The notes: a model not told the origin generated them from the sequence alone. Numbered from the stretch's first letter, positions 2,764 to 53,422 are shown. The stretch: 64,000 bases of DNA from Phaeosaccion multiseriatum (GCA_965112735.1 OZ218957.1:372001-436000), one strand, 5' to 3'. Translations and numbers: made by a program.

Positions 2764-3365
2764 GAGAGAGGGGGGGGGGGGGCAGGGGATAGTGCGTCGG
2801 GAAGGGGAAGGGGAAGGAGAAGAGGGAGGGGAGGAAAGGGAAGGGTAAGAGGGAGGGGAAAGGGACGGGGTAAGAGGAAGAGGAAAAGGCAGGAACGTTA
2901 GGAGCAGGATCTGACCTTGACGCGGCCGGCGCGGAGGTCAGACACGGTGGAGGCAATCTCTCGAAGGGTGCAGTGCTGACCCGATAGGGACGCCCCGGGC
3001 AGCTCGGGGGGGAGCTTGGACAGCTGCAGGGGACGGGTGGGGATGGCATTGGATGGCAGTGGATGAGGGGGGAGGGTGGTGAGGATAGGAAGGAAGAGAC
3101 GGCAGTGGATGGGGAGGGGGTGTGGCGAGAGAGGTGCGGCTGCGTTGGGCCACATGGGGATTCAAGACACCCAACTACACGCACCTGGTCCTCCATGAGC
3201 GACACGAGGGGAGACACGACGATGGTGATTCCGGGCAGCAGCAGAGCGGGCAGCTGGTACGCCAAGGACTTGCCTGTGGGATGGCAGTGGATGGCAGTGG
3301 ATGGGGGTGGATGGGGGTGAGGGTTAGTAGCCGGCACGTCAGGGCCTTGCTGGGGGGTTGTGTTG

Positions 3366-3418
<53 letters not shown>

Positions 3419-4499
3419 GTGTGTGTGTGTGTGTATGTGCGTGTGGGACGGGTGTGCACGGCGAAGGAGAGAGTGAGAGAGAAGAGAGCCAAAGCGTGAC
3501 ACACTGCCCAAAGGAGACAAACTGAGAAGAGCGGGAGAGAGGGGAGAGGACTTGTCGGCCCCACCGGTTCAAGTCTTCGCACTGCCTGACTGTCCCTCCC
3601 CCCCCCCTCCCCCCATCAACTGCCGTCCACTGCCATCCCCCCCCAAGTGACTTGCCTGTGCCAGTGGCAAGGACTAGTAAGCTGTTCCTCCCCTGTAGGG
3701 TCCTCTTCACGGCCCACTCCTGCCCCGCCCTGAAGCTGGAGTGTCCGAACACCGACCTCAGTGCCCTCCCCACCGTCAAGGGGCCCCTCTCCCTCTCCGT
3801 GTCCGGCATAGGAGGGGATCGAGCCTTGCCCTTGCCCTTACCCTTGCCCCTGCCCCTGCCCACGGCCTCGCCCTTTCGCTTCCTTTTGGCGGCGGGAAGC
3901 CCTCCCTCGCCGTCGCTGCCGTCGCTGTCGTCGCTGGTGTCGCTGTCACTGTCACTGTCACTGTCACTGTCACTGCCCATAAGCCTGCCCCTGCCTATAT
4001 GCCTGTCCCTGCCCACTTTCTCCACGTGCCCAACCTCCTCGAGCTCGATCCGTTCCCAGTCCTGCTCTTCCTCCATTGCCTCTTCCTCTTCCTCTTCCTC
4101 TTCCTCTTCCTCTCCGTCGTCCTCTTCGTCCGAGTAGGGGCTCTCTCCGCCGCTGTCAATCAGTTCACTCCACGGGCACAAGTCATGACTGCCCTCACTA
4201 CCCTCGCTCGCGTCGCCATCACAGTCGTCGTCGACACCACCCTCTCCATCTTCGAAGTCCTCATCCTCATCCTCATCCTCGCCATCACCCCCCCCTCCCT
4301 CAGCCTTGTCCTCCTCGTCGCCCCCCCCTGCTGCCCCGCTGCTGGCCCTGGCTTTCCTCTGCTGCCATCTGAACAGCGCCACTTGCAGAGCAAGGTCGTC
4401 TTGCGGCGCCTCTCCGCAGTCCTCGGCGGCGTACGCTGCGGCAGCGGCACTAATGGGAGGAGGAGATGCCTTGACCTGAGGAGCGCCTCCTTGCCCTTG

Positions 4500-4547
<48 letters not shown>

Positions 4548-5373
4548 GCTCTCCCGGAAGCGGGCCAGCTTGCTCGCCAGCGGCGCACACTCCATGCCCA
4601 CGATGTCGAAGTCGAAGCTTGCCTCGTCCTCCCCGGACTCGGAGCCGGAGTCGACAGTGGAAGATTCGGAGGACGACTCCTCAGCGCCCCCTCCTCCCTC
4701 GCTGCTGTCCCTCTTACTGTCACTGCCCACCCCTCTCTGACCCATATACCCCTGCTTGTGCCCCTGTTTGACAAGCTTGCAGGCGCGGGCTCTCCCTAGA
4801 CGCACCAGCTGCAGCTGCAGGAGACGGTCCACGAGCACCCCCTTGGAGCCGGCCAAGGACGGGGATGGCAGTAGACGGCTCTCCTTGAGGCGCGCCTTAA
4901 GCTCGGGTACGGTGAGGGCGGCGAAGCGCTTGTGCCACATCAGCCCTTGACGGTGCAGCCACTCCTCCTTAGAGCCCTTAGTAGAGCTCTTCTTACCCTT
5001 GGAAGATTGGCCTGCCCCTCCTGCTGCCTGCGCCCTTTGACTCTCCGGTCTGAGGCTGTGGAGCGCCACCTCGGGATTGTCCTCCGCCCACATAAACATG
5101 TCGCAACCCTCCCCCCGGGGCAGAGAGCAAGCGTAGAACCACCTGCCCTTGTTGCCGCCGGCCTTCTTGACCTTGAGCAGCTTGCACATACGCTGATGGC
5201 GAGGACACTTGGGGGCCAGCAGTCTGAGTTCGTCCTCCTCGGCCTGCCCGGCCTTTGACTTCGCCTTCTTGTCATTCAGCGTCGCCAGCTTTAAAGCCAC
5301 CCTCGCGCGGCGCCCCTCTTCCTCTTCCTCCTCCTCGTCGTCGTCATCCTCCTCCTCCTCCTGCTGCTGCTGC

Positions 5374-5405
<32 letters not shown>

Positions 5406-8400
5406 ATTCAACTCGTCCCTTCCTCCCTCCTTACCCATTCCCACTGCCATTGCCCTCGCCCCCCCTCCCCCTTCGCCCCCCGCCCCTCCCATGGCGTCGA
5501 GGCATTGCTCCAGAGGGTCCACCCCTCCGCGCTCGTGCCCCCTGCTGCGCCCGCCTCCCCCGCTGGGCCGCTGCGCCATTTCGCCAGAGACTGGATCTAG
5601 CACGGGCTTCCAACCCCCAGAGCCGCCGCTCTTCCACCTGGAGGGTCAAGGCCATGGGAGGAGGAGGAGGAGGAGGTGGTGGAAGTAGATGGCAGTGGAT
5701 GGCAGTGGATGGCAGTGGACGGCATGGGAGAGGAGGAGATGACAGTAGAGGGCATAGAGAAGAGGGACTGTCAGCACACCGCCACACGACAGAGAGAGAA
5801 AGCCGTCGTCGGACTAACCCCCTACCATCTGCCGCCATCCCCCTCCCCCTCTCCTCTGAACTCGACTCACTTGCTGTGGTAGCGCTCGTCCTGCTTCCTC
5901 CTCCAGAGCTTGTTCTTGGTCTTGCCGTTCCTGGTGCGCATGAGGCCCCTCTTTTTCATATCCATCCTTACGAAGTTGTCACTCACCTCCGGCGACCTGT
6001 GAGTTGAGCCCTTTGAGCCCTTCCTCTTGTTCACCCCCTTCGCAGCAGCAGGGGGAGCAACAGGAAGAGCGGCAGTCATATGGGCAGCCCCACCCCCCCG
6101 CGCCGCTGCCTTCCCCTTGGCTTTGGTGGCAGGCTCACTCCCCTCCGTCCCTTCCCGTCCCTGCTCATGCTCGCCAGTCCCGGCTCCGTTGGCGGAAAGT
6201 AGTTTGGGCCGTCTCTTGCCGCCGACACCGCCGGAGGCTGATGATGATGCTGAGGCTGCTCGCCCTCCTCCTCCCCCACTCGCTGCATTCTCCTTCCCTA
6301 CTCCCACCCCCTCCACTCCAGTGCTCTTCGCCCCCTTTCCGCGACCCTTTCCCTTCCCCTCGTGCTCCTCATTCTCCCACCTCTTCTCCCAATCCTGCTC
6401 CTCCTCCTCGGGCTCTGAATTGGTGCCCTCCAAGGCCTCTAAGGTGCCACCTCCACCAATGTCTTGGTGGCCATCTTCCTCTCCATCTTTGCAATCCATC
6501 CTGTCCAAGCCGTCTTCGGAGGAGCAATCAGCCCCTCGCTCTTCTCGCCCCTTCCCATGGGGCGAGCCAGGGCCTTCGCCCTCCTCCTCCTCCTTCTCCT
6601 CCTCCTTCTCCTCCTCCTCCTCCTCCTCCTCCTCCTCCTGCGCCCCCTGCCGCTGTCCCTGTCCCCCCCCCTGCTGCTGCCTCCACGGCTCGTCCCTCTC
6701 CTCCTGCCTCGTCAGCAGCGCCTCCCTGGCCTTCCTGTCCTCCTCCTGCTGCAGCGACTGCCGCACGCGCATCTGCCAGTCTCCATTAATAGAGGGGATG
6801 GCACCAGAAGGCCGAGCGGGGGCCGCCAGTGCCAGTGCTATGGACGGCCCGGCGGTCGCCGTGGGGTCGGCGGCTGTGGTGGAGCCTCGAGCTTGCCTCC
6901 CCCTCCCCCTCCCCCCCCTGGAGGACTTCCCCCTCCCCCCCCTAGAGGACTCGCCCCGGACACTTCTCGATGCCGCGGCCACCGCTGCTGCCGCCGTGCG
7001 GTCTCGCACGAGTCCCCTGGAGGGGAGAAGGTGCCCCACTCCTCCCGTCTCCATCGTCGTCGCTATGGCCATTGCCAGGCTGGCGGGGTCGCCCTGCTGT
7101 ATCACCAACTGCTGCTCCTCCTCTTGCTTCTTCCCTTGCATCTGTATTTGCTGTCTGCTCGGTGCAGTACCACTAACTGCTGCTGCTGGTGCTGCTGGTG
7201 CTGCCGTTGTTGCCGGCCTTGGCGCCGTCGCCACAGCTGCGGCAGCGGGTAGCGGGGTCGACAGGGGCGTTCCCGAGCGGGGCCTACCCGGGGGGGGCAG
7301 TCCCCAGTCCTCGTCCTCAGAGTCGGGCTGCTCGCCCGCCCCCCCTCGGCGCTGTGGAGCGACGGTCTTCACCTCCGGCGCTCTTCGAGGAGGAAGCATC
7401 TCTTTGCCCGGGATGACAAGTCGCTCCTCCTCGTCCTCATCCTCGTCCTCATCCTCGTCCTCCTCGTCCTCCTCGTCCTCCACCACCTCCTCCTCCTGCT
7501 CCTCCTCCCCCTCCCCCTCTTCACTGCGCCACCCCCCCTCTTCGTCACTGCTCTCTTCGCAGCGGTGCGTGCTTTTGGAATCCCCCATCTTGCCCTTCCC
7601 TGTGGTATTGGCCTTGCCTCCAGCTGTCCCCTTCACCCCCTCCTCCTTGCCCTTGCTCTTGACCTTCTCCTTGCCCTTGCCCTTCGCCTTCACCTTCCCC
7701 TTCCCCTTCCCCTTCCCCTTCCCCCTCCCCTTTCCCTCCCCCTCGGCCTCCTTGACTCTCGCCTTCTCCTCCTCCTCCTCCCTGCGTAGCTCCTTGACAC
7801 TTTCTTGCAGCGCCTGTGCCCGACGTGACGTCAGCACCTTGACTTTCCGCCCCTCTCTAGCCCCCCCCTCCAGCGCGTAGCTCGGGCCCGTGCGTGTGCG
7901 GCCGTACTGGTCTTTCGCACACAGAATGCTGTTCGGGGCCGCTTCCACCGTCGGAGCGAGGCGAGGGAGGCCGAACCGAGTGTCGTCCCTCGCAGGGCCT
8001 GCCGTGGAGGCACTGGCGGTGTCCACGTCGGCATGTTGACGTGCATGACGTGCAGAGGCAGAGTCTACTCCCCCCCCTCCCAGTGCTCGCACAGGCATGG
8101 ATGCAGAGACAGAGGCGGAGGCGGCGGCGGCGGCGGCGGCGGCCACACTCGTGAAGCTCGAGAGGCTCGTGCTCGTGAAGCTCGTCACCATGGAACGCGC
8201 CTCGAGCTTGGGCTTGAGCAGCGCCAACACCTTTCTCTGTGCCGCCGCCGCCGAAGAGGGGAGCGCCCTCCCGCCCATGCCCAGGCCGCCGCTGCCCAGC
8301 AAGGAGGGGCCGCTGACCTTACGGCCACTGCCACTCCCGGGGCTGGAGCTGCGGCTGTGGGGGCGAGGAGGCTTTCGAGCTCGCAGGGTCTGGAGGAGAG

Positions 8401-8820
8401 AGCGTAGCACGGGAAACCGGGAGGGAGGGGGGTACATGGGGGGGTCAGAGGCAAAGGACAGGGTGTGATGGGCGGCGTAGCGGCCGTCAGAGTCTCCTGT
8501 TGACCGGCAAGACAGGAAAAGGAGAGTGAAGAGGAATCCTCGCGGGATGTCATCCACGGTGTTGCAGACAGACTGGGCACACGGAGCGTAGAAGAGGGAG
8601 GGTGGGTGTGTGTCACCAATGGTATCACGGATGGTATCACCTTGGTGGCTCGGCCCTGCGTGAGCTTGTCGAGCTCTCTGAAGGCGGCGAGCGTCCGCTT
8701 GGAGGCGTTGGTCGTCTCCAGCTGCAAGGCCTCCAAGTCCGCTAGGCACGGCTTGCGCCTGTGCATCTTGAAGAAGCGCGCCTCCCACTGGTCCACCTCC
8801 TTGCGCAAGGCGGCCTCCAT
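1..8820 (-). CDS. RECQL4: RECQL4-type ATP-dependent DNA helicase, multi-exon, 3' end beyond the left window edge (Sld2/Drc1-like N-terminus, zf-GRF, SAP, RecQ core)
   Basis: ATG at 8820 gives MEAALRKEVDQWEARFFKMHRRKPCLADL (Sld2-like). Also SDNFVRMDMK; zf-GRF PKCPRHQRMC...GRWFYACSLPRGEGCDMFMW (~5090-5215); SAP LTVPELKARLK...GSKGVLVDRL. Helicase motifs across exons: FGHSSFRAGQ, ATGTGKSLAYQLP, VSPLVSLMEDQ, VDEAHCISQWSHNFRP, LALTATA, YHGGM, VATVAFGLGVD, YVQEIGRAGRDG. Confidence 0.92.
640..693. repeat. Intronic 11-bp tandem repeat (CCTGCTTGACA) x~5
   Basis: Read directly; lies in a RECQL4 intron. Confidence 0.9.
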
Positions 8821-10954: not shown

Positions 10955-11075
10955 GTTTCTCTTGGTTAGGGGTGTTTCTCTTGGTTAGGGGTGTTTCTCT
11001 TGGTTAGGGGTGTTTCTCTTGGTTAGGGGTGTTTCTCTTGGTTAGGGGTGTTTCTCTTGGTTAGGGGTGTTTCTC
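10955..11075 (+). repeat. 19-bp minisatellite (GTTTCTCTTGGTTAGGGGT) x~6, each unit containing TTAGGG
   Basis: Perfect units read directly. Confidence 0.95.
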
Positions 11076-11144
11076 GAGGCGCCATCAAAGGCGCTGCTCG
11101 GCAGGAGGGCAGCCTCCCTCGCTCATCGCTCATCCGATGCAAGA

Positions 11145-11197
<53 letters not shown>

Positions 11198-11731: not shown

Positions 11732-14700
11732 TTACGGCAGTTCAGAGGCCCTCTCTCTTCTCCGCTTTTTCTTCTTCTCCTTCTTCCTCTTCTTCTTCTC
11801 CTCCTTGTCCCTCCTCCGCCTCGCCTCCCTCTCCTCCTCCGTGTTGCAGATGGGGCTTGGCGCAGCGTCCACGCAGCTCTCCCCTCCCCCACTGCTGCCC
11901 ACGTCCCCCTTCTCGCCGGCTGTCTTGCTGGCCTTCTCCCCCTTGGTGCTCTTGTTGCCGGCATTGCTGCTGCTGCCCTGCTCCCCTCCCCGCTCGTCCT
12001 CCCTCTTCCTCTTGCTCCTCCTCTTCGTCTTGCCATTCTCCCTCCGAGCCGTTCCCTCCCCCTCCCCCTCCCCCTCCCCCTTCCCCTCCCCCCCGACCAC
12101 TTCGAAGAGTGACCTCATTCTCCTCTGCAGGGCGGGCACTCGCTGCTGCGCCTCCGTCTCATGCATCATAGCGGACTTGGGCTTCACTACCCAACCATAC
12201 AAAGGCAACCCTGAGCCTGAGCCGTTGGCTGTGGTGCCCCATCCATAGGCGGAGTCCGGCCTGACGAGGTGTTTACGCTCGTCCTCCCGCCATTGCCGCT
12301 CGCTACCGTACAAGAAGCTGCGCTCGAACACGATGGAGCCGGCCTGGTACGGAGGGGGAGGGGCAGAGAGACAGCGGCAGTCAGGGGCGGCAGAGGGGCA
12401 GGGGGGGGGAGGGCGAGGGAGGGAAGAGTTTTTCTCGATCGACAAAAGGGACCTCCGAAAGGGCAAAGGACGAGAGAGCGCAAGTGGGAGGCAGAGGGGA
12501 AGGAGCACAAGTGAAATGTGTGTACACCGAAACAAGCAAATTGCCCTACGGAACAAGCAGATGGCCCTACAGAACAAGCAGATGGCCCGGCCCTACGGAA
12601 CAAGCAGATGGCCCTACGGAACAAGCAGATGGCCCTACGGAACAAGCAGATGGCCCTACGGAACAAGCAGATGGCCTTCCCCCCCGGGGCCCACGGTAAG
12701 CAATCACACACCTCTCTCAGCCCCTCCGCCCCCTCGGGCACAGCGTCGGTCACTGTGGATCTGCCCGCCACCCCCGGCCTTGACTCAAGCAAGCGCAGGC
12801 GGCGCCCCAGCAGCGCTGCAGGCAAGGCGTAGCGCCTAGTCTCAATGGTCTTGTCCCCTGTGAGAAGCTTCGAGGCCCAGGGCTGCTGAACCTCCAGCGC
12901 CACGCCAGGCATGTCCGCCCAGCGCACGCCATGTGCCGCTTCATCTTCATCTTCAACTTCACCTTCTTCTGCTGCTGCTGCTGCTGTACCACCAACCGCT
13001 ACATCATCCACCGCGGAGCCCGACGCGCTGCCGCAGTGCCCCTCCGCCTCCCCCACCCCCCCCGTGGCGTCTCCACCCCCGCCTTGCTCCCCTCCTTGGC
13101 GCAAGAAGTGTCCCAAGGGGACGAACGCAGCAGCAGCGAGCCCCCCCTGCTGCCCCTCCCCATATGCCTCCATCACCCCGCTCCCTCCCCCTGCTCTGCC
13201 CCCTGCCATGTCCTCTGCCCGTGCGAAAGCGTCACCCCAGTGCCTCACGGCAGCTGCCAAGGCACCCACCTTAGCGGGCAGCGCAGAAACGCCATGAGTC
13301 CTGCCCTTGCCTGGGCCTGGGCCGCCCCCTGGCGGCACGTGAGAGAAGAGGAGGGGCACGGGGAGAGGATGGCAATCCACGGGCAACCTCCGGAAGGCAG
13401 GGTCTGCCTCCCGCTGTGCCCAGCCGTCACGCATGGCCTGCACACAGAGGGATGGCAGCACACACGCGCGAGTAAGACCTCGCTTCCATCCAAAAACCCT
13501 CGTCTCCTTTTCCTCCCCTCTCTCTCTCCTCCCCTCTCCTTCTCCTCCCCTCTCCTTCCCCTCCCCTCTCTCTCTCCTCCCCTCTCTCTCTCTCCTCCCC
13601 TCTCTCTCTCTCCTCCCCTCTCTCTCCCCTCCCCTCTCTCTCCCCTCCCCCCTCTCTCTCTCCTCCCCCCCTCACCTCTCTCTCCTCCAGAGCCTCCGCC
13701 AAGGCCGTGTAAGCCTCGCGAGGTGAGGCGCCCCCCCTCAGCTCGAAGGCCTTCAGCGCCTCGAAGTGCTTCTGGCGCTTCCTCCTCGCCTTGCCACCCT
13801 CTTTGCTGCCGCACGGCAAGGGGCTGGGCTGAGCCTTGTCTTGCGCGTGCTCCGCCGCCCCGCTGAGGCAGGCAAGTGCAAGCAGAGTGCGCTCTTCCAG
13901 CCTGCTCCAGTAAGTCAGCAATGCCTGTGGTGCATCGGTAGTAGAGAGAGGGAAGCACACAGAGGTCGGCGCTTGAGGGGGGCAGGCGCAGTGTGCGCAC
14001 GCACGGGACGGAGCCACGCACCTTCATAGGCCCTGCCCACCACTCGTGGAGCTCCTCATGGCGCCGGCCCTGCGCAGGCCACAGTAAGTCAGCGAGTCTG
14101 TCAGTAAGTCAGCGAGTCATAAAGGTTCGATGCCTCGCTCCGTACCTGCACGTAGAACTGACGGACCCACTCCATCTCGAGCTCTGAGAGTAGCAACTGC
14201 TCGGCCTTCCACTGCTTGAAGGAGCGCTTCGGTGGGCTCTTGAGGACTGCCTCGCAGCGGGCGGCGATGTAACCGTAAGTGTGGCCCTCCGTCTTGGCCA
14301 CCCGGTGTGTGCTGGAGTAGCGGTGAGAGCTGCCACTCAGCACGGTGTGCTGGTGCTGTTGTGGCGGGGGGGAGGGGGAGGGGGAGGAGAAGGCTCAGTA
14401 GGGGGTGGAGCCGAGCCCACTACGAGTGCGAGCGATGCACGACGGACTTATGTACGGACTTACGTACGGACTTACGTGGTGGTTGAAGTCGTCCAGCAGG
14501 TAATAGGCGCTGCGGCTGGGCAGGGTGAGGGCAATGGAGGGCGTCTCGGGGCCGCTGCCGCCACTGCTGTTCATCTTCCCAGCTGACGGGCCCTCTGCGT
14601 GGGGACTCACCCTGCGCAGACAGCATGCAGATGGAGCGCGTGAGTCAGTGAGTGAGCGAGACAGGTGGCAGGCTGGGGGGGGGGGGGGGCTTGGTAATGT

Positions 14701-15108
14701 TTGTCGGCGCGCTGCTAGCTCTGTACCGCCAGTCTCGGCCCATCCACTGCCATCCCGCCCCCCGTGGGCGAGGTCTGCCTCACCTCAGGGCGATCCTCCA
14801 ATCGTCCACGTGCGGCGCTGCCCCCACCCGCGCTGCATGCACCTGCTGCCCATCGCCCCCCTGGGTGCTGCTCTCCGCGGTAGTCTTGGCTTTCTTGTGC
14901 CCCCCCTTGCCCTTTACCGACATTGGCTTCGGCTTTGGCCCTCCCTGACTGTCGGCAGGCCTGGGGGGAGTGGTGACGTGATAGACAGCGATGGTGCTGA
15001 AGTGGTCCTGAGAGGAGGCCGAGAGAGGTACAGACCCCAAACAGACAGACACGCACCCCCGTTAGACTGCAGCGGCGAAGAGAGCGACAAAGGGAAGGGA
15101 GGGGAGGA

Positions 15109-15148
<40 letters not shown>

Positions 15149-16958
15149 CCTAGCAGCGAGCGGGAAGGCCCTCTGCGGAGGAGCAGGAGCTCAAGCAGTG
15201 GTACTCCCACACTCTCTCATTCCACTTGCCCCCCCCCCCCCCAAGCACTGACCAGGCAGGAGTCAGCGTGCCAAGAGACGCTGGCCTTGTCTCTGTTGAA
15301 GAGCGGCTCCCGCTTCAGATCCGCCTTGAGCTCCTTGGGCAGCATGCAGTTCACCAGAGACAGCGAGAAGCGGCAGCTGCCCACCACCCCGTCCGAGTGC
15401 CTGCGGCCGTCCACGTCTCCCCTCGGGTCTCGCGCCCGCGCCTCCTTCAGCGCTTCCAGGTGCTGGCTGGAGCGCTGCACGAGGCGCTGATTGAGCAGGT
15501 GCACACTCCTGCGGGGGTGAGTTGGTGAGTCGTTCGAGCAGAGGCAAGAAAGGGTTGGTCAGGAGGGGACGACGCTGGCTTTATTTACTTCGTGCCTCTG
15601 CTCTGCCTCACTACCCCCGCCATTCTTGGACGAAAAGGAGCCCTGCTGGCCCGAGCAGACTCGGTCATAGCCTGTGCGCCTCTGCTCACCGTATGGCCTC
15701 GTGCGCCGCTCCTTTGGGAGCGTCCTGCGCAGTCCATGGATGGGCGAACATGCGCAGGCCTGCGGTGCGGTCAGGGTCAGGGTCAGGGCCAGGGTCAGGG
15801 TCAGGGTCAGGGTCAAAGGCAGGGCCGGGGCAAGGGTCAGGGCCAGGGCCAGGGTCAGGGTCAGGGTCAGGGCCATGGTCAGGGTCAGGGTCAAGCGCAG
15901 GGTCCGGCTCCGAAAGTGTCTCGCACTGATACGCGGAGCGGAGGAAACGCCTTCCATTCATCTCCTACAACCCCACCCCGGAGCAGAGCCCGGCCGCTCC
16001 TCGCCCCCCCCTCCCCTCCTCCCTTTGACTCACCGAGGTACTTGTATGTGGTGCCCGCCTCTCCGAGGAGTGTCCTCGACACCATCGTCAGCGCACACTG
16101 CCGGAGAGGAGGTGTGAAAGGGGTGGATAGGAGGGGCAGGAGGGCGCGGGGGTTTGGTGCGGAGAGGGTGGTTAGACAGAGACTGGGCAACATGGGGCGA
16201 TACTGACTGACCTTTGTGCCGAGTCCACCCGGCTGAGTGACTGACAAGAGAGAAGGGCAAAGCGAGATGGTGCACGTGTGTGAGTGTGTGTGTGCCCAGA
16301 GAGGGGTGCGAGTTGGCCGCCGGTCAGCGAAGAGGGAGAGAGGAGGGCTTGGCAATTGACCCTCCTGTCCAGCGACGCCTCTCACCGTCAGTCTGGAAGA
16401 TGCCGAGGTCGCTCATCCGCTCGAAGGCGGCTCTCATCTGGTCATGCTCCCCCTCCTTGCTCAAAGCAGAGGATGGAGGATCCACCACGAAGCCCCTTTG
16501 TTTAGAGAGAGAGAGAGCGAGACAGAGAGAGTGAGAGAGTGGTAAGACAGAGAGCAGGAGGGCAAAAAGAACAAAAGGAGAGAGCGGGTGGAAGAGAGAA
16601 TGGCGAGAGAGAGCGAGAGAATGAGAGGGAGGGGGAGGAAGAGATTGAGAGAGAGAAGAGGCAGAGAGGATGGATTGTACACTCACACACCGCACCTGTA
16701 GCTGCTGCTCAAGAGGTGGTCAAAGTCAGGATCGACAGGTGTCCAGAAACGCTGGTTGTCAGCGACCCCACCCTTCTTCGCATTCTTCGCCTGTCGCAGA
16801 GCCTGCGCGGGAGGGATGAACTGCAGCGGTAGGGCGCAGTCTCTCCTCTTGGGTGCGGTGTGCGGTGCCTGCTGCCCTTGCTGCGCGTTCTGCTGCTGAG
16901 GGCCTTTACTGTTGCGCTCCGGCTCAGCTCGCTTCCGCTTTTTCCAGCCGCTCTTCAT
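11732..16958 (-). CDS. FTO: FTO-family Fe(II)/2OG nucleic-acid demethylase with a C-terminal ASCH (PUA-like) domain and lysine-rich tail
   Basis: Exons encode FTO hallmarks: VSRTLLGEAGTTYKYLGLRMFAHPW, LVNCM, LKREPLF..ASVSWHAD (HxD), STIAVYH, AYYLLDDFNHHHQHTVLSGSSHRYSSTHR (distal His and two Arg), ELEMEWVRQFYVQG, and CTD-like RDGWAQR...RRLPVDCHP. The same exon continues into LEVQQPWASKLLTGDKTIETRRY (ASCH). Confidence 0.92.
12530..12676. repeat. Intronic 21-bp tandem repeat (GAACAAGCAGATGGCCCTACG) x~6
   Basis: Read directly inside intron 12344-12711. Confidence 0.92.
15770..15903. repeat. (TCAGGG/CCAGGG)n telomere-variant-like repeat at the 3' end of an FTO intron
   Basis: About 20 degenerate hexamers; the sense strand reads (CCCTGA)n just before the acceptor. 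Confidence 0.85.
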
Positions 16959-17309: not shown

Positions 17310-18401
17310 ATGGGGGTTGGGATAGAGTTAATGACAGGGTTTGGGTTATGGCTATCATTAGGGTTATGGGTAGGGCTGGGGAGCAGCAGAAGTGTCACCA
17401 AGAGTAGTAGCAGCAGCGGAACGAAGAAGGGGGACTTGAGAGCTAGGCCGAGGGGATCTGCTCATGAAGAAGCGGAACCCACCTATGAGGCCTGTGAGAA
17501 GGCATTGGCACAGGCTCTAGTGCTCAGCACAGTCATGGGCTTTGTTGGCGAAGGTCATGACGCTTTCATAGCGACGGTGAGTACGGAGTGGAAGGACCAC
17601 TACAGACGTGTACATTCCACCAAGAGGACGACTGAGAGGAGCGTGGTAGAGTGCGTGGAGCGCGTGTACTGGGCGAAGCGCTTCGGATGTAAGCTGACTG
17701 AGGAGACATTCATGCTTGCTGCCAGGCATGGGACTGTCGCAGTGTGCAAGGCCCTCCATGGCAAGGACTGTCCCTGGAATGAACAAGTTTGTCTCGCGGC
17801 GTTGGACAACGAGCAGAAAGGCCTGAGTATTCTCCAGTGGCTGCGATCCGAACATCTTCAGGGGAAGAAGAGGTGCCCATGGCATGCCGGCATTTGTGGC
17901 GCTGCGGCGTATGGTGGAAAGCTGGTGATGCTGCAGTGGCTGCTATCGAAGGAAGGGAATGCTCCATTTCCCTGCTCTAGTTGGGATTCTGCTTGCTTGG
18001 CGGGACACATTCCCGTGGTGGAGTACCTCATAAACCACCCTCGCACGAGAGCATTGCTGGAAGCGAATAGAGGTGGGCGGTGGCGCAGCGGGGCGCGGTG
18101 GGCTGCGAGGAAGGGACACCTAGGGGTGCTGCAGCTCCTCCACGCCAATGCCCGCCACCTCTGCCGCTGGGATGCGGCGGTCTGCAGTGATGCAGTCATA
18201 CGCGCCAAGAGCCTGCCAATCCTCAAGTGGCTCCGGTCAGAAGAGGTGCAGTGTGGCTGGGACGCAAAGTCGTGCCCACAGAGCATCAGGGACGGAGGGA
18301 GACCCACAGACGACGGCTGGGATGCTACCCACGCCGAAACTGCAGCAAAATTGAAGGAGTGGGTGCACGCCCATGGGCACCCCTGCGACTGCGGGGTGTG
18401 A
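17310..18401 (+). CDS. Intronless F-box-like/ankyrin-repeat protein (type A, copy 1)
   Basis: VLSTVMGFVGEGHDAFIATVSTEWK, then repeats such as CPWNEQVCLAA, AAYGGKLVMLQWL, AARKGHLGVLQLLH, WDAAVC; ends WVHAHGHPCDC. Resembles the CPW-type ankyrin family of brown algae and giant viruses. Start codon uncertain. Confidence 0.8.
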   Translation: MGVGIELMTGFGLWLSLGLWVGLGSSRSVTKSSSSSGTKKGDLRARPRGSAHEEAEPTYEACEKALAQALVLSTVMGFVGEGHDAFIATVSTEWKDHYRRVHSTKRTTERSVVECVERVYWAKRFGCKLTEETFMLAARHGTVAVCKALHGKDCPWNEQVCLAALDNEQKGLSILQWLRSEHLQGKKRCPWHAGICGAAAYGGKLVMLQWLLSKEGNAPFPCSSWDSACLAGHIPVVEYLINHPRTRALLEANRGGRWRSGARWAARKGHLGVLQLLHANARHLCRWDAAVCSDAVIRAKSLPILKWLRSEEVQCGWDAKSCPQSIRDGGRPTDDGWDATHAETAAKLKEWVHAHGHPCDCGV

Positions 18402-19648: not shown

Positions 19649-20719
19649 TCAGTCCTGGCAGTCGCAGGGGTGTCCATTGGCGTGCACCCACTGCTTCATC
19701 TCCTCAAAGGTCTCGGCATCCATATCATAAAGGATACCTCTGTCCCTAATGACCTGTGGGCACGACCACTCGCTCCACTCACACTTCACATGGTCTGATC
19801 GGAGCCACTTGAGCATGGGCAGGCTCTTGGCGCGCATGACTGCAGTGTAACAGATCCAATCATCCCAATCACAGAGGTGGCGGGCGTTGGCGTGGAGGAG
19901 CTGCAGCACACCGAGGCGACCAGCTTGGGCAGCGCACAAAGCCCCTTCGCGCCAAAACCCGCCTACATTCTCTTCCAGCACAGCCCTCGTGCGAGGATGA
20001 TTGAGCAGGTACTCCACGGCCCGAATGTGACCCGTCGTACAAATTGTGCTCCAGCTGAATCTGTCAAATGGAGCATTCCCTGCCTCCGATAGCAGCCACT
20101 TGAGCATCTCCAGATTCCCGTTCAATCCAGCAGCTCCACAAGTCTGTCCATCCCATGGACACCTTTCCTTCTCAGGAAGATCCTCGGATCGCAGCCATTG
20201 GAGAACATTCAGGCCATGCTGCTCATTGTATGCCGTTTCACGGCACACCCATTTATTCCAAGGACAGACCTTGCCATGAAGAGCCTTACACACTTCAACG
20301 TCTCCGTACCTAGCGGCGACTCTGAAGACTCCTTCAGTTAGCTCCAGGCCCTGCTTTATCGCCCATCTCACGCGCTCCACAGAGCTGACCACAGATGACA
20401 AGTTTGTCTTCAGGGCTGGGTATAAATGGCCATAGCGGGTCCTCAACTCCTTGTTTGTGCCAGCCACAAAGAGGAACTCCCCCCCACCCACGTACTCCAC
20501 CACGGCCTGGAGCAGCTCGATAGTGGCCAAGGCCTCGTGGCAAGCTTTATAGAGGCCTTCGGTCACTTCTTCTTCTGATACCGCAGAAGCCCCATCTTCG
20601 CGGGAATCAGCCTCACCGGCATCTCGCTCATACGTGCTTCCGTCCTCATGCCCAGTCCCACCAGCAGCACCACATTCCTCTGGCCCTCCTGCAGACTCGC
20701 CTTCCAGGGAAGGGGGCAT
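19649..20719 (-). CDS. Intronless F-box-like/ankyrin-repeat protein (type B, copy 1)
   Basis: LLQAVVEYVGGGEFLFVAGTNKELR, CPWNKWVC, CPWDGQTCGAAG..GNLEMLKWL, ends WVHANGHPCDC. Confidence 0.82.
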   Translation of the reverse strand: MPPSLEGESAGGPEECGAAGGTGHEDGSTYERDAGEADSREDGASAVSEEEVTEGLYKACHEALATIELLQAVVEYVGGGEFLFVAGTNKELRTRYGHLYPALKTNLSSVVSSVERVRWAIKQGLELTEGVFRVAARYGDVEVCKALHGKVCPWNKWVCRETAYNEQHGLNVLQWLRSEDLPEKERCPWDGQTCGAAGLNGNLEMLKWLLSEAGNAPFDRFSWSTICTTGHIRAVEYLLNHPRTRAVLEENVGGFWREGALCAAQAGRLGVLQLLHANARHLCDWDDWICYTAVMRAKSLPMLKWLRSDHVKCEWSEWSCPQVIRDRGILYDMDAETFEEMKQWVHANGHPCDCQD

Positions 20720-26238: not shown

Positions 26239-26836
26239 CTATTCACTGTCCACAAACACCTCGCAAAGCACGCCTTGCACATACTCCTGCTGCGTGTCCA
26301 CATCCGCCACAGAGCAGCCCTTGATCTGATGCAGCCCAGTCACAAGCGGCACGAACTCCAGTGGACAGCGCACACTCTGCCCGGGCTCCAGTACGCCCAA
26401 GTCAATGAAGCTCATTCCGTGCACGTATATGCCCACCATATCCTCCGTCTTAAACTGCAGACGGCAGCCTATGGCACGCGGCCCTCCTCCTCCCCCTCCC
26501 CCTCCTCCTCCCCCTCCCCCTCCTCCCTCCCCCCCCCCTCCTTCTCCTCCTGTATGGACGGCAGTGCCACTCCTGTCCGTGTTGTTGCGCACGACAGCTG
26601 TGATCCCCGAGGAGAGTTTCCCTAGCACCATATGCTGATGACTGGGCAGTCCCTCCAACACTACCGACAGAGCGGGTAGGGGAGGGGGGGTGTACACAAT
26701 GTCGTCACTCTGTAGTGCCCCACGCTCTCCCATCGTCGTGCGCCAGAGTAGCTCTACCCGACCGAGGGTTGTCGTCGTTGCCTGCTGCTGTTGTGTGCCC
26801 AACTGCTGACGCTCCTCCTCCTCCTTCTCTTCCACT

Positions 26837-26881
<45 letters not shown>

Positions 26882-28739
26882 TGCTCCTCCTGTTGCTGCT
26901 GCTCCTCCTCCTGCTGCTGCTTCTCCCGCTGTTGTGTGGGGTCGAGACCATCCCCACCCGCTGTATCACCAACTGCTGCCACACTGCCCGAGCTCCCCCT
27001 TACGCGATACACGAGTTGGTGGGAGTGATTGGGGCAGAGCAACAAGGCGCTGTCCATCCACTCAAGGGGGGTCATCTCGGAGGGGCCCACGGGAGGAGGA
27101 GCGCCTCCTGCTCCTTCCTGAGCACCGGCTGACCCTGACCCTACCCCTGACCCTAACCCTGACCCTAACCCTGACCCCGACCCTGAACCCCAGCCAGAGT
27201 CTGGTGCCAGCATCTCGGCGTGGAAACCTGCCTCAGACAGGAAGTCGTGGCTGTTGATGAGAAGGTCCATCTGCGTGAGGTTGGTGAGCGTCACCTCCAC
27301 GAGGAGGGTAAGTGGAGCAGCAAGAGGAGAAGTTGGTGATACAGCACCACCATCCTGGCCCTCGCCTGCCGCGTCGCCATCGTTGTTGCCGTCGTTGCTG
27401 CCTGGGTTGCCTTGGCTGCTGCCTCTTTCCACCACCCGTCGGCAGGAGACGTTGATCTCCAGGGGGCTCAACACATTAAACCTAATTTTGGAGCAATAAC
27501 GGTAATAGTTGAAGGTTTTCTGGATCGATCTTGATGGAGCGAGCCACCCTCCTTAACCAAGGAGCTGTCCAGTTCCTCATCCGCCTACTCCCTTACTCCC
27601 CCCCTCCCTTCCTCCCTCCTTCACTCACTCCGTCACTCACTCACTCACTCACTCACTCACTCACTCTCTTTCTCCCTCCCTCCCTCATTACACCCACCTG
27701 TAGAACTTTCGCAGTGTCTTGGGCTCGGTTTCCGCGTTGTCTCTATCACTCTCCCGGTCATAGTACTTGACACCTACCCTCAGGGTGTGCGTGCCAAGCT
27801 CCGAGAGGGGCGAGCACACAATCATATCGACCTTCTCTCCGCATCGCAGCACTGGCGCGGGGTTGTCGGGCAGGGAGGTGGCTCTGAAGAGGGGAGAGAG
27901 GGAGGTCGATACACACACAGAGAGAGAGAGGGAGAGGGCAGAGAGGCGGAGAAAGCGGGTGAGGGAGAGGGGGTGCGAAGGGGCGGTACATTAGAGTGCG
28001 GGCGGCGGGCGCGTGCAGAGAGGGGAGCCAAGATCTGTCCATGTGCGAGGTGAGATTCAGATGGTACAGGGAGGGGCGGTGAGACCTGAAACGCCTGCCT
28101 GCCTGCCCACCCGCCTGGCTGCCTGAGTCAGACAGAGACAGACACACAGACTACTCACCCTCTCTCCATGCGTTTATCGTCGAGATCGACGCGCTTTGTG
28201 GGCGATTGGAGCTTTGCCGACACATGCACGTCCACGAGCGTCCTCTGCTGCATGTAATTGAGCAAGCTGATGTAAGCAGTGAACTCCTCTCCGCGGTAGA
28301 TGTTACCGAAGCTGTCCGGAAGCTTCAGCACGTCGCTCAGCGTAAAGTCAGCAGCGTTTGCATCGTGGTCACCACTGGTGTCTTTCCCCTCTCCTCCTGC
28401 TGCTTCTACTGGTTTTTCCGTTCCTGCCTCCCCTCCCGTCCCTGTGAGACCGTACTCGCCGAGCTGAGAGTGCAGCTTCGGTTGCCCAGCCGAAAGAGCA
28501 GGGTGGTATAGACGAAGCACTCTGAGCGTGGGCGGCTCCAAAGCTACCGCGGGGCCCTCCTGCGGTTTCTGCTGTTGCTGCTGCTGCTGCTGTTGCTGTT
28601 GCTGGTACCCTCCATCATAAGCACCGACCGGGGTTTGACCTATCGGCTGCCGATACTGGTGCTGGTACTGCTGGTACTGCTGCTGCTGCTCCTGCTGCTG
28701 CTGATACTGCTGGTCATATTGCTGCTGTTGTTGCGTCAT
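26239..28739 (-). CDS. TRAPPC13: Trafficking protein particle complex subunit 13 (DUF974), 3 exons
   Basis: LRVLRLYHP, LKLPDSFGNIYRGEEFTAYISLLN, LSELGTHTLRVGVKY, LRKFYRFNVLSPL, LGRVELLWRTTMGERGALQS, FVPLVTGLHQIKG. Confidence 0.92.
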
Positions 28740-29040
28740 CGCGCAGCTCCTCTGCACAGATCAGCGCGACCCCATGAGCAAGGCCAGACCTGAAGAGATG
28801 GAAGAGGAGAGAAGAGGGAGAAGAAGGTGTTAACATACGAGGGATGGATTGTTAAAAGCTAAAGGTACATCGGATGATAGTTGCTTCTATCCTGCATGTT
28901 CTAATAACCGGTTCTTCTTGTCATGGCGATGATTGGGGGTGCAGGAAGGTAGTAGGAGGAGGAGAAGGGCGAGCGACAAGGGCTGAAGTAGAGAAAAAGA
29001 GGAAGAAGAAGGAAGGAAAGAACGGGAGCACTCTCTCACC
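28740..29040. promoter_or_regulatory. Probable bidirectional promoter between TRAPPC13 and NCKAP1
   Basis: Divergent ATGs at 28739 (-) and 29041 (+). Confidence 0.5.
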
Positions 29041-31008
29041 ATGGCGCTCGAGTCCGGCCTCGCCATCGGCACATGCCAGGTGCTGTGAGAATCACTCTCT
29101 CACGCACTCACTCACTTACTCTCTCCCTCCCTCTCTCCCTCCCTTGCTCACTCTCTGTCACACCCTCATCCACTCCCTCCCTCCCTCCCTCTCTCTCCCT
29201 CTCCTGCCCCACCCCCCCCCCTTCTCCCTCGGACTCGCCATCGGCACATGCCAGGTGCTGCGAGACTCCTGTCGAGGCCTCATGACGCAGCTGCACTTCC
29301 TCAAAGCCGACAAACTGAGCAGCTCGAGCGGAGGGGCCAACGCCGCACCCCACCGCCCGCCATGCCTATCCCAGAAAGGCGAGCACAGCTTTAGCTATGC
29401 CAAGCTCCGCAAGAAGCTTGAGAACACCTTCCCACCCCAGCTTCAGGACGTCATCAGGGCCGACCCCAAGTTCGAGCAGACCGCGAGGAGCACGATGACT
29501 GAGCTGCAGCCAATCTTCGACACCTTCACTGATGTTGCCGAGCTCCGGGAAGAGATAATTGCAGCCCTGCGCGACATAAGCGGGTGCGGAAGCAACAGCA
29601 GCAGTAGCAGTGGTGGTGGGAGTGGCGACGATAGCGGAGGAGGACCTCCTGAGTGGCATCTGGATCAAAACTCCATCCTCATGCACAGCTTCATGGACCT
29701 CTTTGTGGACCTGGTCAAGCTTATCCTCATGGCCGCTGAAGTAGACGAGGCTAAGGCGGTGATGGGGCTCTACATGGTCGCCAGCCAATGCTGCAAGTCG
29801 GGGGGAGGAGGAGGAGGAGGAGGGGGAGGGGGAGAGTCTTTTCGCAAGGTGGCGGATCTAGTGGTGGCGGTTACGGACGACCCTTTAGGTCGGCTTGCCA
29901 AGGACCTTGGCCACCGGGCAGTGGGGCCGTTGCGTGGCACCATCGCCGATGCCCTTCTGGAGGTGAGAGAGAGCGTGTACCTCTCGCTCAGCACACACGA
30001 CCTACGTGCCCGCAACCTCCTTACTGTGCTCTATGAGAGAGACGCCATGGCCCTACCTACCATGCAACCACTCTCTGCCAAGTACCCCACCGTGTTGGCA
30101 ACGACTGAGCTGTGTCGAGCGGATGTCTACATGGGGTGGGTGGCTTACTGTGGCCTTGCCATACCGTCGGAGATCTTCCCCGACAGCGGGTTGCTGGAGC
30201 TGTTTCGAGCCGTATGTGGAGCAACCCTCGTGCTTCCTGTATTTCGCAACGTATCGCTCAATCTCCAGGCCGAGATTGAGAGCCTGGCCTTTGGTAACAG
30301 CAGCGTTGTGACAAGCCTCGTTCTGCCCAGAGGCCTCAAGCTCAAGCAGTACGCAAAAGACATTACCAAGGAAGGCATGTTAGGAGCCGGTCTAAAGCGC
30401 CGTGACAAACGTGCCTACCTTCGAGTGCAGCTGGAGGACCTGTGCTCTTTGCTCTCTCAGACCCCTGGGGTGCTCGGACCGAAGTTTCCCATGGTCTTGT
30501 GCGCACTCTCCATGGCGAGGCAGGAGATTGAGTCCTACTTTCGGCACCAGGGGGGGACGAGGGGAGGAACCAAGAGGACACAGGCCAAGTACTTTGATGC
30601 AGAGGCATATGGGGATGTGTTCATCAGCACCCTCATCGGGAAGGCAGATAAACTCCTCGCTATTGTACAGAGGTGAGTTGTGAGGGAAACATCTGATGCT
30701 GACCTAAGGGTTACGTAATTGTGTGTGTGTGTGCGTGTGTGGAGGGTGGGTTGGGGGGGGGCGCATGGGGGGATGGCTGTAGTTTGCCACATTCTGTAAC
30801 CGTCACACCCCCCGCCTCCCAACACACACAAACAAACCCACAAACACACACACACACACACAAACACAGGTACAGCTCGGTGGTGCAGCGGTACTACACA
30901 GAGTACCTGAGCGGGGCCCAGCGTACCTCGCTCGCGGCTCGGCTTACTGAGCTCCAGGCCAGTGCCTCCGCTTACAAGAAGGTCAGCAAGGTCGGGAGGG
31001 TTGGCGGC

Positions 31009-52300: not shown

Positions 52301-53422
52301 ATGGAGCACACCAGTGAGGAGAAGGTACCGGTGGAGGGGCAAAAAATGCTCCCTCCCCCCAAAGGCAAGTCTGTAGCAGGGTCGGAGGAAGGTGCTACCG
52401 CTGGTGGGGCTGGGTATGAGGACGGAAGCACGTCTCTATCGGACTCTGAGGGAGATGGCGAGGCCGATGTGGGCGACGATGGAAGGTCTGCAGTTTACGA
52501 AGGAGGAGGGAGAGAAGGCCCTTACAAAGGTTGCCACAGGATTTTGGCCACTACCGAGCTGCTCCAGGGCATGATGGAGTATGTAGGTGGGGACGATTTC
52601 CTGTTTGTTGCTGGCACCAGTAAGGAGTGGAGGGTCTGCTATACCCATTTGTACCCAGCCTTGACGACGACCTTGGTGTCTGTGGTCAGCTCTGTGGAGT
52701 GCTTGAGATGGGCGGCGAGTCAGGGCCTCGAGCTGAGTGAGGGGGTATTCAGAGCCGCTACTGAGCATGGGGATGTAGAAGTGTGGAAGGCTCTCCTTGC
52801 CTATGACTGTCCCTGGAATGCAGATATATGTTTGACAACGCTATCCAACGAGAAACATGGCCAAAGTGTGCTCCGATGGCTGCGATCAGGGGAGCTTCCG
52901 GGGAAGGAGAGGTGTACATGGGACGACCATATTTGTGCACTGGCTGGGATGGAAGGAAATGTAGAAATGCTCAAGTGGCTGCTGTCGGATGAAGTACAGG
53001 CCCCGTTTACGCACGATAGCTGGAACTTCGTTTGTAAGGGGGGTCACATTCCCGCCATGGGGTACGTGCTCCATCATCCTCGCACGAGAGCCTTGATTGA
53101 GGGGAATGAAAACGGAATGTGGCGTGAGGGGGCTTTCTACTGTGCTGAGAACGGCAGCCTTCGGCCGCTGCAGTTCCTCCACGCCGCTGCCCGCCACCTC
53201 TGCCTCTGGGACGCTGACGTCTGTTACAATGCAGTCTTGAATGGCATGAGCCTTGCAGTACTCAAGTGGCTCCGATCAGAGGAAGTGCAGTGCCCGTGGG
53301 ACCCAAGATCGTGCCCACAGTTTCTCAGGGATATAGGGTTTCTTCGTGGTTCAGACACCAAGGCCTTGGAGATCGAGCAGTGGGTGCATGCCAACGGGTT
53401 TCCCTGCTTATGCTGGATCTGA
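52301..53422 (+). CDS. Intronless F-box-like/ankyrin-repeat protein (type B, copy 2)
   Basis: Paralogue of 19649-20719 (LLQGMMEYVGGDDFLFVAGTSKEWR; ends WVHANGFPCLC). Confidence 0.82.
   Translation: MEHTSEEKVPVEGQKMLPPPKGKSVAGSEEGATAGGAGYEDGSTSLSDSEGDGEADVGDDGRSAVYEGGGREGPYKGCHRILATTELLQGMMEYVGGDDFLFVAGTSKEWRVCYTHLYPALTTTLVSVVSSVECLRWAASQGLELSEGVFRAATEHGDVEVWKALLAYDCPWNADICLTTLSNEKHGQSVLRWLRSGELPGKERCTWDDHICALAGMEGNVEMLKWLLSDEVQAPFTHDSWNFVCKGGHIPAMGYVLHHPRTRALIEGNENGMWREGAFYCAENGSLRPLQFLHAAARHLCLWDADVCYNAVLNGMSLAVLKWLRSEEVQCPWDPRSCPQFLRDIGFLRGSDTKALEIEQWVHANGFPCLCWI

Follow-up and report, generated by a model that had tools for sequence, protein, structure and literature searches.

Several algal FTO proteins bear ASCH as a further domain at the C-terminus, as reported by Tung et al. 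in 2015 (Mol Metab; PMC4354923, section 3.6 and Supplemental Figure 8A). Noting that fused domains often interact when they occur separately, these authors predicted a contact between FTO and the ASCH protein TRIP4, which was then confirmed in mammals, and Iyer, Zhang and Aravind cited the FTO-TRIP4 interaction in 2016 (PMC4738411) when they suggested that ASCH discriminates modified bases. Searches of the literature in full text returned no other paper treating FTO with ASCH, and none on the ASCH tail of algal FTO. Here, we examined a gene of this architecture encoded on the minus strand, from position 16958 to 11732, of a 64,000-nucleotide stretch of Phaeosaccion multiseriatum DNA (GCA_965112735.1, OZ218957.1:372001-436000), which is referred to at its full length as the window. 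An earlier note, made by a model from the sequence alone, had described the gene as an FTO demethylase fused to an ASCH domain and implied that the fusion was new. The note had itself allowed that the fusion might turn out to be a described common architecture, and this is what was found: it was reported for algae in 2015 (PMC4354923) and recurs in 85 protein clusters, and the FTO-ASCH architecture of the window gene is already known and common.

The window gene has the domain order of the described algal proteins, namely FTO catalytic domain, FTO C-terminal domain and ASCH, and is colinear with the 85 algal FTO-ASCH proteins, but its linker is longer, comprising ~140 low-complexity residues. 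The catalytic and C-terminal domains are shared with vertebrate FTO (human, PDB 3LFM, and others), the H-x-D...H and arginine motifs of which can be aligned with those of the window, but vertebrate FTO is without ASCH and binds the ASCH protein TRIP4 in trans. The ASCH domain of TRIP4/ASC-1 (PDB 2E5O, 8YEW and 9KYK) has a GKER-type octapeptide, as in the window, but TRIP4 pairs ASCH with a zinc finger, whereas the window gene pairs it with a dioxygenase. TTHA0113/TthASCH (2DP9), ZmASCH (5GUQ) and YqfB are small beta-barrels with conserved Lys and Glu; the window tail has the same residues and is predicted to share the barrel. These prokaryotic ASCH proteins are, however, single-domain and bacterial, and YqfB has Thr where the others have Glu, a substitution recorded in a 2026 preprint that is not peer reviewed (10.64898/2026.02.27.708502). 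A fungal fusion of an AlkB-family dioxygenase with a SAD/SRA domain (PMC4738411) likewise joins an eraser to a PUA-like barrel recognising modified bases, but belongs to a different dioxygenase clade, barrel family and lineage than the window gene.

The gene comprises 13 exons with 2994 coding nucleotides (998 codons), from an ATG at 16958-16956 to a TAA stop at 11734-11732. After the DNA had been read and its stop-free segments listed, exon placement relied on tblastn searches using proteins of relatives and on canonical splice sites, and single exons or stop-free segments served as queries in all database searches of the window gene. All introns have GT..AG ends, the phases agree, and none of the 13 exons, each checked singly, contains an internal stop codon. 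The exons run colinear with the relatives' proteins over the whole coding region (11732-16958), and the locus is in all likelihood a nuclear gene, intact and rich in introns, from an alga of ochrophyte (stramenopile) type.

The FTO part was recognised by profile and by alignment to the human protein. Exon 6 alone matched Pfam FTO_NTD (PF12933) with 60.7 bits (E 1.8e-16, threshold 27), and further pieces of this profile were found in exon 4 (profile positions 53-75) and exon 9 (260-275). Pfam FTO_CTD (PF12934) is split over four exons, with profile positions 2-62 in exon 9 and 121-151 of 170 at the start of exon 12. Single pieces of this domain scored 23.7 and 14.8 bits, under the threshold of 27, and the C-terminal domains of colinear relatives scored 62-108 bits against the same profile. 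The H-x-D of exon 6 aligns beneath the H-x-D iron ligands of human FTO, and exon 9, which aligns with human FTO at E 2.7e-9, has conserved H-Q-H and R-x-S-S-T-H-R stretches containing the distal histidine and the 2-oxoglutarate-site arginine pair. Because these motifs align to human FTO, the active site looks intact in the window gene. The iron ligands and arginine pair are kept in all full-length relatives of a nine-row alignment (A1) that was used as a profile query, a profile of relatives matched human FTO at E 3e-75, and an AlphaFold model of relative P0067 gave a target-normalised TM-score of ~0.85 when superposed on human FTO. From the conserved active site we infer that the protein would oxidatively demethylate N-methylated bases of single-stranded nucleic acid. 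In a Foldseek search of a viral library, the FTO catalytic core of the P0067 model was matched by AlkB-like domains from giant viruses, from phages and from the replicases of plant viruses.

The junction between the FTO and ASCH parts lies within a single exon, as the earlier note had claimed. Exon 12 (13437-12712; 726 nt, phase 0, stop-free) is preceded by an AG acceptor at 13439-13438 and followed by a GT donor at 12711-12710, which confirmed the coordinates, splice sites and single reading frame exactly. In that frame FTO_CTD positions 121-151 are followed by positions 1-37 of 103 of Pfam ASCH: the last FTO_CTD helix extends to ~13348, the low-complexity linker occupies ~13347-12928, and the first ASCH half, bearing the G-x-K-x-x-E-x-R motif, lies at 12927-12712. 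The second half occupies exon 13 from 12343, where the exon begins in phase after an AG, to ~12152, and is followed by a C-terminal tail that is Gly/Glu-rich and Lys/Arg-rich and resembles a nuclear localisation signal. A Lys/Arg-rich C-terminal tail is likewise present in relatives P0067, P0008, P0022 and P0076. The completion of ASCH in the next exon and the basic tail behind it, both read by the earlier note from the DNA, were borne out.

The tails of 85 relatives were made into a profile, with the window rows excluded, and this profile was scored on all 1598 stop-free segments found in six frames of the 64-kb window. Just two segments were matched, 12190-13671 on the minus strand over tail-profile positions 4-64 (E 9e-21) and 11735-12592 on the minus strand over positions 67-127 (E 1.6e-11), a result that exceeds chance. 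The ASCH domain is complete and is split by an intron near tail-profile position 65. The first ASCH piece matched six relatives and the second matched five of those (P0003 only partially), and in the proteins of these five relatives the matches of the two pieces are separated by 2-4 residues (14 in P0008). Since the two pieces match adjoining residues in five relatives' proteins, the 12712|12343 junction is supported.

Identification of the tail as ASCH rests on the family. On its own, the first ASCH half of the window, a single exon piece, scored 13.3 bits against Pfam ASCH (PF04266; E 0.14, threshold 21.2), and its best matches in the structure database were ASC-1/TRIP4 ASCH domains (E ~0.06-1.3). 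Two relatives passed the Pfam ASCH threshold (P0123 with 26.3 bits and P0133 with 21.4 bits) and three others were just under it (P0008, P0067 and P0010, with 16.5-19.1 bits). When family profiles were compared with the structure database, the non-FTO matches were all ASCH proteins, comprising TTHA0113, five ASC-1 sequences and a Zymomonas ASCH, and the second half of the tail profile matched TTHA0113 (2DP9) at E 8e-4. The tail of the P0067 model is a beta-rich domain with a predicted local distance difference test (pLDDT) score of 88-97. In the Foldseek viral library this model matched annotated phage ASCH proteins with E 1e-6 and 3e-5 (ranks 9 and 46) over 153-161 aligned columns, a tail-length match. 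When the full-length P0067 model was compared with the structure database by Foldseek, the entries listed were all FTO/AlkB-family and carry no information on the tail. In the 85 relatives the octapeptide is strongly conserved (G in a fraction of 0.96, K in 1.00, E in 0.98, otherwise Asp, and R in 1.00), as are several other, invariant tail positions, and the window has all of these together with the full octapeptide. Because of this family-level evidence from Pfam, the structure database, the fold model and the motif, the tail is taken to be, with good probability, a divergent GKER-type ASCH domain. The ASCH identity asserted in the earlier note was therefore upheld through the relatives' profile, the motif and the P0067 fold, but not by the window pieces alone, which fall under the Pfam threshold.

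The fusion is widely distributed among relatives. Exon 6, when searched against 1.84 billion representative proteins, gave 79 matches. All ten of the long matches tested were FTO, with a weak ASCH match behind the C-terminal domain in two of the ten. The top two representative matches (P0001 and P0002) were discarded, as they consisted of many short stretches or lay inside a 3842-residue protein. With the A1 profile as query, 460 FTO-like proteins were retrieved with E-values no higher than 1e-10, and the tail was present in 85 of the 194 proteins scored (E 1e-28 to 1e-64), counted as protein clusters. These 85 include proteins from Ectocarpus, Nitzschia, Cylindrotheca, Pseudo-nitzschia and Triparma, and tail carriers among the named relatives include Phaeothamnion confervicola, Discosporangium mesarthrocarpum and Chrysoparadoxa australica. 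The tail of the FTO relative from Choristocarpus tenellus gave no ASCH match, and word-index searches with tails only (P0076 residues 480-793 and P0067 residues 480-625) returned the queries alone. Two proteins with both the FTO and ASCH parts, P0119 and P0137, are derived from MMETSP transcripts and marked complete, and the fusion is therefore one mRNA in those species. The nearest FTO relatives of the window gene are ochrophytes, the best of them being ~40-60% identical to it per exon, and the window protein itself was absent from the protein collections searched. The FTO-ASCH fusion is thus common in ochrophyte algae, that is, in brown algae, diatoms and their kin.

Based on these features, the protein combines, in this order, the Fe(II)/2-oxoglutarate dioxygenase and helical C-terminal domains of FTO with a flexible linker, a GKER-type ASCH domain (a predicted PUA-like beta-barrel) and a basic tail. 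The chain thereby combines an apparently intact FTO active site with a constrained ASCH motif, and has basic patches at both ends. We propose that in the nucleus it removes methyl groups from N-methylated bases of single-stranded nucleic acid, and that its ASCH barrel, being tethered in cis, probably contacts this substrate as well. In this capacity ASCH would be a binding or targeting module, such that one chain would do what mammalian FTO and TRIP4 do in two. A binding or targeting role is, in our analysis, the most likely one for ASCH, ahead of hydrolysis; nucleic-acid binding by the TRIP4 ASCH domain is cited in the 2026 preprint. The overall reading of the gene as a known algal FTO-ASCH architecture with ASCH as a binding module is probably correct. 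The idea put forward in the earlier note, of a reader or deacylase coupled to the demethylase, would fit the conserved ASCH motif.

Several points count against this reading. The splice model was derived from relatives and canonical splice sites, not from transcripts. The ASCH pieces of the window are each under the Pfam threshold, which makes membership of the family a matter of transitivity through relatives, and the modelled fold is that of relative P0067 and not that of the window protein. Moreover, the conserved Lys and Glu are expected under binding and catalysis alike, and their conservation therefore does not separate the two.

This last point bears directly on the alternative that has fared best, in which the protein is a two-eraser enzyme and its ASCH domain a putative N4-acetylcytidine (ac4C)/N-acyl amidohydrolase like YqfB and TthASCH, so that methyl and acyl marks would both be removed. 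In its favour, three residues of the octapeptide are kept in the 85 relatives (Lys in 100% of them, Glu in 98% with Asp in the rest, Arg in 100%) and also in the window, and the second half of the tail profile matches 2DP9 as given above. According to the 2026 preprint (10.64898/2026.02.27.708502), which defines the GKER subgroup, GKER-type ASCH proteins lower ac4C in tRNA, with the Lys and Glu being essential, and the set with this effect includes TthASCH (2DP9), EOLA1 and the ASCH domain of TRIP4. ASCH proteins that have been described as binding nucleic acids, however, conserve the same residues. The preprint itself reports that TRIP4 ASCH was inactive on the free nucleoside and that some GKER proteins were inactive on tRNA, and it has not undergone peer review. 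We therefore regard the two-eraser enzyme as unlikely. A more specific version, in which the dioxygenase would remove marks of the N6-methyladenosine and N6,2'-O-dimethyladenosine (m6A/m6Am) type, the ASCH Lys-Glu pair would hydrolyse ac4C on the same RNA, and mammalian FTO-TRIP4 would represent a split ancestral machine, appears distinctly improbable. Given the preprint on ac4C lowering, a second, hydrolytic activity of the ASCH tail is a possibility, albeit a doubtful one. The searchable literature contains both the fusion (2015) and the claim of ac4C erasure by ASCH (2026 preprint), and no paper joining the two was found in it.

Returning to the binding module, its assignment to ASCH could be questioned on the grounds that PUA-like folds look alike and that the window pieces are under the Pfam ASCH threshold, which would leave room for another PUA-like barrel of the EVE, YTH or SRA type. 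This is very unlikely: only ASCH proteins appeared among the non-FTO sequence matches in the structure database, Pfam ASCH was the sole such family matched, with two relatives above its threshold, the ASCH-specific octapeptide is present and conserved, and the Foldseek matches of tail length that bear a name, at ranks 9 and 46, carry ASCH annotation. Although the linker is a long low-complexity stretch, a 368-nt repeat-bearing intron interrupts the ASCH domain and the gene model was built from relatives and splice sites, it is extremely unlikely that a separate ASCH gene downstream of FTO has been read together with it by artefact, since one stop-free exon spans the end of FTO_CTD and the start of ASCH, both ASCH halves fit the tail profile end to end, and the 85 relatives, some of them complete proteins derived from transcripts, show this order within a single chain. 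This agrees with the earlier note, which saw no gene-model artefact in the fusion.

The exon structure of the gene, on the minus strand throughout, is as follows. Exon 1 (16696-16958), read from the sequence, carries the ATG and a basic N-terminal patch, and the FTO N-terminal region begins in it. Alone it gave no Pfam match, and relatives P0076 and P0003 also have a basic patch at the N-terminus. The FTO N-terminal domain continues through exon 2 (16386-16495; tblastn with P0022 and P0003, splice sites), exon 3 (16212-16240), exon 4 (16034-16097; Pfam FTO_NTD and tblastn) and exon 5 (15690-15759; sequence, phase, splice sites and conserved A1 columns). Exon 3 is a 29-nt micro-exon placed by sequence, phase and columns 137-146 of A1, and encodes a ten-residue stretch that every aligned relative keeps; it could readily escape automatic gene calling. 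Exon 6 (15253-15508) contains the catalytic core with the H-x-D iron-binding motif, exon 7 (14784-15007; tblastn with P0008 and P0010, splice sites) the catalytic domain with a variable lysine-rich loop, and exon 8 (14476-14611; tblastn and sequence) the catalytic domain as far as a histidine run. Exon 9 (14146-14355; human FTO alignment and Pfam) contains the distal iron-binding histidine and the 2-oxoglutarate arginine pair, and within it FTO_NTD ends and FTO_CTD begins. The FTO C-terminal domain then extends over exon 10 (14022-14069; tblastn and sequence) and exon 11 (13676-13924; tblastn with P0003, P0076 and P0010, and sequence) into exon 12 (12712-13437; Pfam, sequence and tail profile). 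Intron 12 (12344-12711; 368 nt, GT..AG ends) interrupts the ASCH domain at a point where the relatives' proteins are continuous, and exon 13 (11735-12343; sequence and tail profile) carries the remainder and the tail. The intron at 14356-14475, of 120 nt, is a multiple of three in length and in the same frame as its flanking exons, and the tblastn alignment continued uninterrupted over it, but it contains a stop codon.

Four of the FTO-gene introns contain tandem repeats, resulting in spurious long open reading frames (ORFs) on the opposite strand. These comprise a 21-bp unit repeated 6.7 times at 12531-12676 in intron 12, a CT-rich 16-18-bp unit at 13503-13688, a 12-bp unit repeated three times at 14442-14477 and GGTCAG repeated 22 times at 15769-15904. 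Plus-strand and other-frame ORFs over the locus gave no credible Pfam match, the one weak match sitting in a Gly/Gln repeat. Downstream of the FTO stop are a perfect 19-bp tandem repeat of four copies (11000-11075) and an (AG)27 run (11142-11196), both probably in the 3' untranslated or intergenic region.

Elsewhere in the window, three intronless ankyrin-repeat ORFs of ~360 residues each lie at 17310-18401 on the plus strand, 19649-20719 on the minus strand and 52301-53422 on the plus strand. The first of these, on the strand opposite to FTO, begins at a distance of 351 bp from the FTO ATG, and the two genes may share a divergent promoter region. The remaining ORFs comprise a GRF zinc-finger protein (3339-5603, minus strand), a 973-residue ORF with no Pfam match (5867-8788, minus strand), TRAPPC13 (26239-27474, minus strand) and the N-terminal part of Nckap1 (28874-30676, plus strand), which are ordinary eukaryotic housekeeping neighbours.

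FTO-ASCH is a textbook 'Rosetta stone' case, being one chain in algae and two interacting separate proteins, FTO and TRIP4, in mammals, and the algal fusion has already been used to discover the FTO-TRIP4 interaction (PMC4354923). The window adds one well-resolved gene to this family and shows strict retention of the ASCH motif there. The claims of ac4C erasure make the FTO-ASCH family a good place to seek coupling of two RNA marks, a question that concerns the known family rather than the window locus as such.

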